The notes beneath the pieces are model-generated. The model was not told where the DNA came from. It did no database searches and saw only the letters and a list, made by a program, of their open reading frames with translations. The position numbers and the translations under genes were made by a program. 64,000 nucleotides of DNA from Podarcis muralis (taxonomy: Eukaryota): NCBI RefSeq assembly GCF_964188315.1, contig NC_135661.1:58528001-58592000 (forward strand), written 5' to 3'. Of this stretch, positions 12,750-15,952 are shown piece by piece. Numbering within the stretch: the stretch's first letter is position 1; every line of letters begins with the position of its first letter.

Positions 12750-15700
12750 ATGAATTCCCAGGTGCAGCAGAACTACCACGTGGACTGTGAGGCTGCTGTT
12801 AACCACATGGTGAACCTGGAGCTCCATGCCAGTTACGTCTATCTTTCCATGGTACCTGCTTGCTTTTTCATCTCTCTTGCGCTTTGAGGGAGCATCACCA
12901 GAGAGAAGCCCCTTTGCCTTATGCATGTCAAGTGGCCTCATGTGTGCCGTTGCAGGGGGCTGAGAGTTGTGTCACCCAAGTATGTTTTAACTGAATATTT
13001 CATGGGGCTGGTGCCAAAAGCATCACTCAACAGTGGCTGGTGCTTGGTGGGGTGGAAAGCAGGGAGGTCAGCAGCAGGTGGCGCTAGAGTGAATGTCAAG
13101 CAAAGCCAACAAACACTAGTTTTGTCCCTACCCTTCTCCTCCCTGTTGAATTCTACAAGGGCAAGAGTGAGACCAAGGAGGAGGAGGAGGAAGCTGGCAA
13201 GCAGTGGAACCCTGGACTGGTTCCACGTCAGAAGCCAGGAAGGTGTGGGTAGTCTGAGAGCAGACTGAAGTTGGCGTGGCAGTGCTGCATTCACCCCCAT
13301 GGACCAGATTCCACTGGCATGACAGCTGGTTGGACCTGGTCACACAGGAAGGCACAGAAAAGAGTCTGCAGACAGGCCGTGATTACCTGGAGCAACAAAG
13401 ATATCTGAAATCAGGGCCACTGTAGTCATCATGCAGCTACCCTCTCACTGGCATTGCCTGTAAGCACATGGTGGCTGGGGGAATGTTGGTGTTGGCCCTG
13501 CCTGAAATCCAAACACTGTTTCTCCCATGAATCATATTTGCAACTCCCAGCATTTTAAGCAAAGCTACTGTTGGTCCCTGGTATGGCAATTAGTGTCCCC
13601 TATTTCCTGTCACGGGTCAGGTCAAAGTGTAAAGGCTGAGGCATTTTCCTGGGCTGCTTTAGCATAACAGCCTTGTTAACAACAAGGTGCATCATAATAA
13701 AGACTGAACAGTTTTGCCAATATTGACATTGATTTATAATTCTTAAGATTTTAAGAAACCGGCTGGAATTGTCAGAAAATTCTAACACTTGCCAATGGAG
13801 TGTTCTCAGTGAATGGTCAAATTTCATGCTCCCTTCCATGTTTTAGCAGCAAAGAATTAAGAAAGCCGCCAGGCACCTTTGCCTAAACCTGATCCACAGA
13901 TGGTTGAAACAGCAGCTAAATTGCTGCATAGTCCGCTTAATGGATGACTGGACTTTTCTGTTTTTCTCCCCCTCCCTGACCTCAGTCCTACTACTTCAGC
14001 CGTGATGATGTTGCCCTCAAGCATGTAGCTACATTCTTGAAAGAGGAATCACTCAAGAAGAGGGGATATGCAGAGATGTTTTTGAAATACCAGAACAAGC
14101 GAGGGGGGTGCATCATTCTTCATGACATTCAGGTGTGTGGTGTCTGCTTTCTTGATTAAAGTGGCCAGCAATTGAGGCAAACTAGTCCATTCCCTGTGGT
14201 GCCACAGTCAGGGCATCCGCCTCTGTTTGGTTTACCAGTGTCAGGATGTCTATCTATATGCTTGTATATTTTATTTTACATATTTTGCTTTTTAAAATTA
14301 AAAAAATAGTCTTTTCACATGGAATAAACATACTTTAAAATACAATAAACTCAAACAGTATCAGCAAATCTCTTGTTCCTTGGAAAAAGGTGTAACAGCA
14401 GCTTGAAGCTGGAACCACTACTTAGAACCCATTCATAATGTATTTTAAAGACTCTAATCCACTAGGCCTTTCCAGATGTTTCTGTGGGGCTGGGCAGGTT
14501 GTCTTGACTGATGGTCACATCTCAAATGGGAGATGGATGGATTCTATATGTTGTAGAAGGATGAGGAACTTATCTTGCCTTTGTCCTGGTTACAGGCTAC
14601 ACCTGAGCACATACCACAAGTCTATTGTCAGGCCTGTTGCAGAGCACCAAAATTTAGCTATTTCTAAATGAGTGGCTACCAGCAACAGTGCCAACATCAC
14701 CCAATGAGATAAATGTTGATTTGATTAATTTATTATTCCTAGCAAGGCTAACAAAGGCGTTGGATTTATACTACAGATTAATCTGATTTCTTCAAAGACT
14801 GCTGACCAAAAGCAGAACACCTTGTCACGGCACCACCAAATATGGATGATGTCTATCTATATGCTTGTTGATACTCCCAAAGAACTCTGATAGGAAATTA
14901 GGGCAAGGCCTGTCTTGCTAACCCAATTCTTCTTCGGCCTCTCCTTAACAGAAGCCGGAGCAGGATGAGTGGCAGTCCAGCCTTGAAGCCTTCCAGAGTG
15001 CCCTGCGGCTGGAAGGAAAGGTGAACCAAGGTCTCCTGGACTTACACAAGCTGGCTCTGGAGAAGGAGGATCCTCATGTATGTCACCTGTGGTTAGTGAG
15101 CAAAATTAAAATGGGTAGACATTTGGGGAGAATGGAGGACCCTGAAAAGGCACTTAAAAGCTCATTCTAGTCACCTGGTGCCCTCTGGATTTTTGGAGTA
15201 CAACTTCCACCAGCCTCCAGCTAGCATTGCCATGCAAGTCTGGGCTGATGGGAGTTGCAGCCGAAACCAACTGAAGGGCACCGGGTGGGGGAAGGCTACA
15301 CTAGAATCTCTAAACAAAACATGTAGACCAGGAGCTGGCCCAACATTCATAGACAGGCAGCCCCCTTGGAAAGACCATTTCATATTCTCAAATATTGGCT
15401 TGAGCCAATGACAGCTCAGGCAGAAGCCTTTCCCAGCCACACTATGATAATACACAAGGTCACTTTCATGAGTGAACTTGGGCCCTGGGCCCTTGAGCCT
15501 TTTAAAGCAGGTGCTTCACCCCTGAGCTATGAGCCCTCTGCTCACAGCGCTCGTCTTATCTAGTATCAAAGCCTTTGAGCATTCAAAAATCTCCTTTTTT
15601 TCTGAGCTAGCAGATCCCAGATGTGATGAGGATGATCTGGGTTGGGACTCACCACCAGTGACTGTTTCAAAAGGAAAAGGAAGCGCAAGCCCTGAGCAAT

Positions 15701-15890
15701 TCTTCTCCCTCCCTTGCTTGCCTTCTCTGTGCAGCTGTGTCACTTTCTAAAGTCTCAGTTTTTGGAGGAACAAGTGAAGGCCATCAAGCAGTTGGCAGAC
15801 CATCTATCTAACTTGAGGCGCCTGGGAGTGCCCCAGGATGGTTTGGGAGAGCACCTCTTTAACAAGCTCACCCTGGGGGCGTGCAACTGA
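12750..15890 (+). CDS. Ferritin subunit (H/M-type scaffold, predicted ferroxidase-dead), 176 aa; exons 12750-12851, 13986-14132, 14952-15077, 15735-15890
   Basis: Exon translations: [34 protein letters not shown] | [49 protein letters not shown] | [42 protein letters not shown] | [51 protein letters not shown]. Three phase-0 GT-AG introns at the vertebrate ferritin positions (internal exons 147 and 126 nt). No stops or frameshifts. Confidence 0.95.
13031..13316. repeat. Dispersed repeat carrying a CTCF motif, copy 2 (ferritin intron 1)
   Basis: Homologous to 11481-11625. CAGCAGGTGGCGCT at 13072-13085. Bounded by CAGTGG...CCACTG. Confidence 0.55.
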
Positions 15891-15946
15891 AATGGCAAAG
15901 GACATGCCCCAAATCAGCGGCTATTTGTTATACACGATGCCCTTGC

Positions 15947-15952
15947 AATAAA
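15947..15952 (+). terminator. Polyadenylation signal of the ferritin gene
   Basis: AATAAA 57 nt after the TGA, followed by a GT/T-rich stretch at about 15984-16010. Confidence 0.7.

Follow-up and report, generated by a model that had tools for sequence, protein, structure and literature searches.

Ferritin subunits that do not oxidise Fe(II) are known from mammals, where they are represented by the L chain and by FTHL17. L chains carry a Lys62 that replaces Glu62 and pairs with Glu107 (human H numbering, used for functional residues throughout); they keep D131 and E134, and bear a cluster of cavity carboxylates for nucleation. FTHL17 is a germline and early-embryo ferritin-like protein that is partly nuclear, and its gene is not known to have introns. 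It is H-like and is not a general iron store; apart from residue 62 it retains most of the di-iron centre, with only E61D changed. The M (H′) ferritins of amphibians and fish are active, with E61, E62, H65, D131 and E134 intact. A review gives FTHL17 as X-linked (PMC7760355) and states that E62K alone abolishes its ferroxidase activity (PMC7760355, citing Ruzzenenti 2015). Here we analyse a 64,000-nucleotide stretch of the genome of the lizard Podarcis muralis (assembly GCF_964188315.1, contig NC_135661.1, positions 58,528,001 to 58,592,000 of the forward strand; the window), in which a four-exon ferritin gene lies between ZBTB8A and ZBTB8OS (Archease). We consider it likely that this gene is a functional, tissue-restricted paralogue of the H/M type, that it encodes a non-catalytic ferritin subunit, and that it was present in the ZBTB8A-ZBTB8OS interval before the squamate crown.

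A Four-Exon Ferritin Gene between ZBTB8A and ZBTB8OS

The gene occupies the following positions, counted from the first letter of the window.

12750-12851, forward strand: exon 1, coding part (102 nt, residues 1-34), helix A; E27 and Y34 kept
13986-14132, forward strand: exon 2 (147 nt, residues 35-83), helix B; Q58E, H60L, E61K, E62K, H65Y and R79C
14952-15077, forward strand: exon 3 (126 nt, residues 84-125), BC loop and helix C; E107 kept
15735-15890, forward strand: exon 4, coding part (156 nt with the TGA, residues 126-176), helices D and E; D131H, E134K, Y137F and Y168H, Q141 kept
15891-15975, forward strand: 3′ untranslated region (UTR), with AATAAA at 15947-15952, 57 nt past the TGA; RNA contigs stop near 15976-15986

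Joined by these coordinates, the exons give a 531-nt coding sequence (CDS) for 176 residues with zero internal stops; all exon boundaries are in phase 0, and every intron runs from GT to AG with a pyrimidine-rich acceptor. A sequence-only reading of the window had described this intact four-exon gene, its canonical splice sites and its polyadenylation signal, with coordinates that proved exact once refined, and had rightly argued from the retained introns that it is not a retrocopy. Internal exons of 147 and 126 nt are the classical vertebrate ferritin sizes, and the lizard gene has both these exons and the four-exon structure. The AATAAA is likewise found 57-60 nt past the stop in Zootoca, Lacerta and Elgaria.

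Exons 2, 3 and 4 each match the Pfam family Ferritin (PF00210) singly, with E values of 1e-5, 4e-5 and 6e-3, and the same family is the precomputed Pfam match of the full-length P. muralis protein. Among solved structures, exon 2 matched frog M ferritin (E 7e-14) and exon 4 matched bullfrog and human H ferritin (E 3e-16). A chance origin of the gene model is excluded. A search of a library of 1.84 billion representative sequences with exon 2, followed by two word-index searches, led to RefSeq XP_028594974.2, ‘ferritin heavy chain A-like [Podarcis muralis]’, which is identical to the reconstructed protein over 176/176 residues; the corresponding genomic locus (GCA_964188315.1, OZ076960.1) is 100% identical to the window and has the same 3141-bp CDS span. 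The gene is thus not hidden, as had been supposed: the RefSeq model has the same CDS range, and models exist in at least 15 squamate species. Literature searches on ferritin with ZBTB8A, on reptile ferritin paralogues and on the RefSeq names found no paper on this gene, which is already in RefSeq under a generic name, yet uncharacterised. There is nothing to add for genome annotation, the gene being in RefSeq already.

The window protein differs from an earlier P. muralis RefSeq version at two residues (H83 versus Q, N176 versus S). Five residues of the window allele (F69, I81, H83, N171 and N176) are unseen in other lacertids; these could be polymorphic sites, or could mark a P. muralis branch that is slightly faster.

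Predicted Fold and Functional Residues

An AlphaFold2 model built from a 42-sequence alignment (predicted local distance difference test score 90.7) places helices at residues 11-39, 46-72, 93-120, 124-154 and 161-171, so that five predicted helices follow one another in ferritin order, as a four-helix bundle and a short E helix. Foldseek aligned the predicted model with frog M and human H ferritin at template modelling (TM) scores of 0.93-0.95. Among the closest described proteins is bullfrog M ferritin (PDB 1MFR, 3KA3), which likewise has 176 residues (TM 0.93-0.94, 64-65% identity over aligned residues); frog M ferritin is also the best solved-structure match of exon 2 and falls in the same tetrapod clade as the lizard gene. 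Retention of the 24-mer quaternary structure would fit the overall conservation of the protein and its ratio of nonsynonymous to synonymous substitution rates (dN/dS), about 0.15-0.2, the model itself being that of a monomer.

In contrast to this conserved fold, the five positions that are intact in active M ferritins are K, K, Y, H and K in the lizard protein. Functional residues were mapped on an alignment of 104 ferritins, in which 13 members of the clade formed by the gene and its squamate orthologues were compared with about 90 others. E27, Y34 and E107 are kept in 13/13 clade members, and Q141 in all except two phrynosomatids, which have Glu. E61K is present in 13/13, together with Q58E, H60L/F, Y137F and Y168H (each 13/13), whereas E61, E134 and Y168 are kept in nearly all of the ferritins outside the clade. 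E62K is found in 11 of the 13 (Cys in Tiliqua, Arg in Lerista), and H65 has been lost in 12, where it is replaced by Y, D, N or Q. The di-iron centre (E27, Y34, E61, E62, H65, E107 and Q141) is therefore incomplete. Nor is the acidic pair of the three-fold channel (D131, E134) retained: E134K occurs in 12/13 members, with Gln in Elgaria, while D131H is restricted to lacertids and D131N is found in two geckos. The systematic alteration of functional residues noted by the sequence-only reading is thus borne out for both the ferroxidase site and the three-fold channel, except that D131H is a lacertid feature and not a general one.

Replacement of E62 is not peculiar to this clade. It has occurred independently in many M-like copies, including several of the turtle and lizard array copies; the crocodilian 180-aa genes have H62 and Q65, one tuatara copy has K27, K62 and N65, a Phrynocephalus copy has K27, F34 and K62, and the marsupial M-like genes have K62. 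Judged from these residues, loss of the ferroxidase site is a recurrent fate in the amniote M-like radiation, of which the ZBTB8A-linked clade is the most thoroughly altered case seen, with a ferroxidase loss that probably dates to at least the squamate crown.

The other amniote M-like paralogues (‘heavy chain A-like’ or ‘B-like’) share the four exons of the lizard gene and are 66-76% identical to it (68-75% in the alignment, up to 76% by BLASTP). Several of them have independently lost E62 or H65, although almost all keep E61, E134, Y137 and Y168. Their loci are different ones: in Eretmochelys, for example, they form a tandem array, and in Podarcis, Elgaria and Rhineura they are found on other chromosomes.

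Selection, Splicing and Regulation

Nei-Gojobori dN/dS values for the three lacertid pairs are 0.25, 0.37 and 0.10 (dS 0.05-0.08), and deep squamate pairs give 0.15-0.21, with dS partly saturated. Two of the three lacertid pairs have significantly fewer nonsynonymous changes than expected under neutrality (binomial p 0.009 and 0.0003). Expression was assessed from RNA-derived contigs aligned to the locus, from one closely related congener and from P. muralis. A 498-nt congener contig of depth 176 aligns to 12627-12850, 13985-14129 and 14949-15077, reproducing the predicted exon 1-2-3 joins with GT..AG borders, and the exon 3-4 join (15077 to 15735) is seen at depth 52; exon bins reach about 140-176, versus about 2-10 in introns. 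Use of a second, minor donor at 15090 (depth 21) lengthens exon 3 by 13 nt, with a shift of frame. Since the congener RNA is spliced and dN/dS is well below 1, the gene, which is under purifying selection, is not a pseudogene. The sequence-only reading had named absence of expression, a dN/dS near 1 and disabled orthologues as the marks of a young pseudogene; we find spliced congener RNA, dN/dS of 0.1-0.4 and orthologues that are intact across squamates. The distribution of RNA suggests that expression is tissue-restricted.

Alternative splicing was also seen at 12639-12662, 15078-15090 and 15611-15662. An alternative donor after 12656 in the 5′ UTR agrees with isoform X2 of Lacerta, and an alternative terminal exon inside intron 3 (15611-15662) agrees with isoform X2 of P. 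raffonei. In one P. muralis contig, exon 2 (13985-14132) is preceded by 142 nt without any match in 12300-16200, a piece that could be an alternative upstream exon, ZBTB8A read-through or an assembly chimera.

The upstream features are as follows.

12627-12749, forward strand: 5′ UTR, minimum extent; the congener mRNA contig starts at 12627
12470-12535, forward strand: conserved proximal promoter block, the best-conserved part of a 400-nt upstream alignment of five species
12499-12508, forward strand: half X-box-like (RFX-like) motif CATGGCAACC, within the conserved block and unique in the window

Podarcis, Lacerta, Zootoca, Elgaria and Paroedura were compared over the 400 nt that precede the ATG, and no other block of the promoter is conserved from the lacertids to the gecko. 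CpG is scarce in the proximal promoter (observed/expected 0.11-0.17), and its X-box-like motif hints, purely at the level of a motif resemblance, at a possible RFX-type, testis- or cilia-associated regulation. No iron-responsive element (IRE) was found, either as an Rfam match at E≤1 within 10000-17000 or by a motif scan (C-bulge, 5-bp stem, CAGWGH loop) of the 1.5 kb upstream, a negative that is provisional because neither search had an FTH1 locus as positive control. Because no IRE was detected in the mRNA, translation is probably free of iron regulation, and control by iron regulatory proteins (IRPs) would be lacking.

Phylogenetic Placement and Origin of the Locus

In a maximum-likelihood tree of 74 ferritins, which included no eutherian FTHL17 and no L-chain sequence, 12 squamate orthologues form one clade with support 100/99 (three lacertids, Elgaria, Tiliqua, Sceloporus, Phrynosoma, two Anolis and three geckos), within which branching follows the squamate tree, geckos first. 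This ZBTB8A-linked clade is nested in an amniote M-like clade (100/99) that also holds the turtle arrays, three tuatara copies, the crocodilian 180-aa genes, marsupial genes named FTHL17 and a second squamate clade (98/98). The next relatives are amphibian ‘heavy chain A/B’ and M ferritins, while true FTH1 and a separate sauropsid 177-aa group fall outside. The H/M-type assignment made by the sequence-only reading agrees with this placement. Many reptile genomes carry several M-like copies, some with a damaged ferroxidase centre.

The neighbouring genes in the window are listed below; the large open reading frames of the window include one RBBP4 exon near 28.5 kb and also provide the SYNC position.

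3606-8751, forward strand: ZBTB8A, coding range, upstream neighbour
18129-23076, reverse strand: ZBTB8OS (Archease), coding range, downstream neighbour, tail to tail with the ferritin gene
from 24893, forward strand: RBBP4, next after ZBTB8OS
43.0-44.1 kb, reverse strand: SYNC

The position between ZBTB8A and ZBTB8OS, also given by the sequence-only reading, was confirmed by identification of the flanking genes in the window and at the locus. Four species, Podarcis, Zootoca, Lacerta and the gecko Paroedura, show the order ZBTB8A-ferritin-Archease directly, and in the three lacertids RBBP4 adjoins Archease. Adjacent locus tags for ferritin and ZBTB8A in Phrynosoma, and a shared record for the two genes in Tiliqua, Anolis sagrei and Lerista, suggest the same synteny; in Elgaria no neighbour gene lies within the 10-kb flanks, but the promoter region does align. 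At the DNA level the exon lengths (102/147/126/156) are identical in Podarcis, Zootoca, Lacerta, Elgaria and Paroedura, and the splice sites are intact in all five, with a single GC donor, in Elgaria.

The sequence-only reading had left open whether the gene is an old paralogue lost in mammals or a lineage-specific duplicate. In the first of these, an ancient vertebrate H/M paralogue never lay anywhere but in the ZBTB8A-ZBTB8OS interval, there was no insertion on the squamate stem, and mammals, turtles and others have lost the gene; this is the most probable of the alternatives, although we regard it as unlikely. It would be favoured by the position of the clade, which is not nested in the second squamate clade and groups weakly (92/73) with the crocodilian 180-aa genes; by R79C, which is common to the clade gene, two tuatara copies and Gavialis; and by the age of the family, with the amphibian ferritins as its sister groups. 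Against it, the 10 kb 3′ of ZBTB8A, flanks that stop short of Archease, contain no ferritin in the turtle Emydura or in koala, and the nearest koala relative, an FTHL17-named gene, is on one scaffold with ZBTB8A but about 292 Mb away from it (71.6 versus 363.9 Mb). The turtle M-like arrays are on records of about 44 Mb, versus 8-24 Mb for those with ZBTB8A, an indirect comparison that mostly involves different species. By an approximately unbiased (AU) test (p 0.34), moreover, the two squamate clades could go back to one origin within squamates. A squamate-stem duplication is not rejected by this test, and either origin may hold: the M-like family is old, but the ZBTB8A-ZBTB8OS position was found only in squamates.

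Three candidate orthologues at other positions were rejected. A Rhineura ferritin that is 76% identical to the lizard protein keeps the whole centre, is on one chromosome with two other array copies and belongs to the second squamate clade. The turtle tandem array, which in Eretmochelys imbricata comprises at least three M-like genes (176 aa) within 23 kb, lies at a locus unrelated to ZBTB8A, and the 10 kb 3′ of ZBTB8A in the turtle Emydura are without ferritin. The marsupial ‘FTHL17’, rejected as a neighbour, shares a chromosome with ZBTB8A in four marsupials, but the koala genes are far apart.

Other observations concern the surroundings of the gene. The ZBTB8A locus of Emydura macquarii has two tandem BTB/zinc-finger genes (477 and 480 aa), presumably ZBTB8B or a ZBTB8A-like copy and, after it, ZBTB8A itself. 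Between the 3′ end of ZBTB8A and the ferritin gene, a CpG-island-like patch (10500-11250; GC 0.57-0.62, CpG observed/expected 0.65-0.78) may act as an alternative promoter or belong to the 3′ region of ZBTB8A. A 90-nt near-perfect hairpin at 10198-10287 (-49.9 kcal/mol) matches the Rfam families mir-5408 and mir-727 below threshold, on either strand; most likely it is a palindrome that derives from a transposon.

Relation to FTHL17 and L Chains

The lizard protein resembles FTHL17 in having K62; the scans detected no IRE in its gene, and its expression appears tissue-restricted. The lizard gene differs in keeping three introns and adjoining ZBTB8A, and in altering residues 61, 65 and 134 as well. 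The convergence with FTHL17 suggested by the sequence-only reading is apt as a functional comparison, but is oversimplified as history, E62 replacement being recurrent in a radiation that includes marsupial genes of that name.

A different view of the same resemblance would make the gene the reptilian orthologue, or source lineage, of mammalian FTHL17, with a similarity that is inherited and not convergent. The marsupial ‘ferritin heavy polypeptide-like 17’ genes have four exons with the same boundaries (by tblastn), carry K62 and sit in the amniote M-like clade; FTHL17 is itself inactive via E62K, and the restricted lizard expression and CpG-poor promoter fit such a descent. We nevertheless find it very unlikely: in the koala the gene lies far from ZBTB8A, the marsupial genes are on a long branch (0.52) without support as sister to the lizard clade, and shared K62 is weak evidence where E62 is so often replaced. 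The comparison, in addition, is confined to marsupial namesakes.

With L chains (FTL) the lizard protein may share the character of a non-catalytic cage subunit, and it keeps Glu107. In contrast, its positions 61-64 are K, K, R and G, its channel is neutralised, and its gene is placed in the H/M-type M-like clade, in a tree without L chains; the L-chain nucleation carboxylates were not found.

Discussion

We propose that duplication at the DNA level brought an M-like ferritin gene, with its introns, to the ZBTB8A-ZBTB8OS interval ahead of the crown-squamate radiation, and that geckos, skinks, lacertids, anguids and pleurodont iguanians have it by vertical descent. The encoded subunit is predicted to keep the ferritin four-helix bundle and E helix, and may still enter 24-mer cages. 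It would be unable to oxidise Fe(II), because the di-iron centre is filled by the lysines of E61K and E62K and H65 is gone, and its three-fold entry channel is stripped of negative charge by E134K, plus D131H in lacertids. With the oxidation site and the entry channel both altered, the protein is most likely a non-catalytic subunit, comparable in principle to the L chain or FTHL17, whose role may be to dilute or modulate catalytic H/M subunits in heteropolymers, or may lie outside iron storage.

Several observations weigh against this proposal. P. muralis itself yields RNA contigs of low depth (3-7), some of them partly unspliced, and one P. muralis raw-read RNA run, of which about 12% was read, is essentially empty at the gene. 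Among the best 120 matches, no clade member was found for snakes, agamids, Varanus, Salvator, Rhineura or Hemicordylus; this suggests losses, and the gene may be dispensable in several squamate lineages. The inner surface is not L-like, with K61, K62 and R63 where L chains have carboxylates, and an L-like nucleation role is therefore not indicated. Turtle and marsupial relatives are IRE-negative in the same scans, so that the lack of a detected element could be common to the family or could stem from the limits of the scans.

The remaining alternative, a young or slowly dying duplicate that is transcribed without function, could draw on the loss of catalytic and channel residues, on the squamate families in which the gene is undetected, on the low P. 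muralis RNA depth and on the P. muralis branch, with 7 nonsynonymous versus 5 synonymous changes relative to Lacerta, but it is scarcely credible and largely refuted by frames and splice sites intact in at least five species that span the deepest sampled squamate split (gecko versus the rest), by the low dN/dS, by abundant spliced mRNA in the congener, and by the conservation of the replacement residues K61 and K62 themselves, which points to selection for a new state.

A bolder extension of the non-catalytic reading, which we put forward as a rather improbable one, is that the gene encodes a dedicated squamate IRP-independent ‘closed’ subunit, with lysines at the di-iron ligand positions and a three-fold pore of reversed charge, that caps iron entry in heteropolymeric cages or has abandoned iron storage for a germline or nuclear role, and that it derives from the M-like lineage that gave marsupial, and perhaps eutherian, FTHL17. 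If this were true, FTHL17 would be what is left of an old amniote lineage, instead of a recent retrocopy of FTH1.

Beside the non-catalytic subunits of mammals, the lizard gene would stand as an independent case, roughly as old as the squamates. It would also go further than these, with the oxidation site and the entry pore both disabled while purifying selection continues. The analysis exposes a large, unstudied radiation of M-like ferritins in reptiles and marsupials, with repeated replacement of Glu62, which may offer a natural series on what ferritin cages do without iron oxidation and which gives a concrete hypothesis for the origin of FTHL17.

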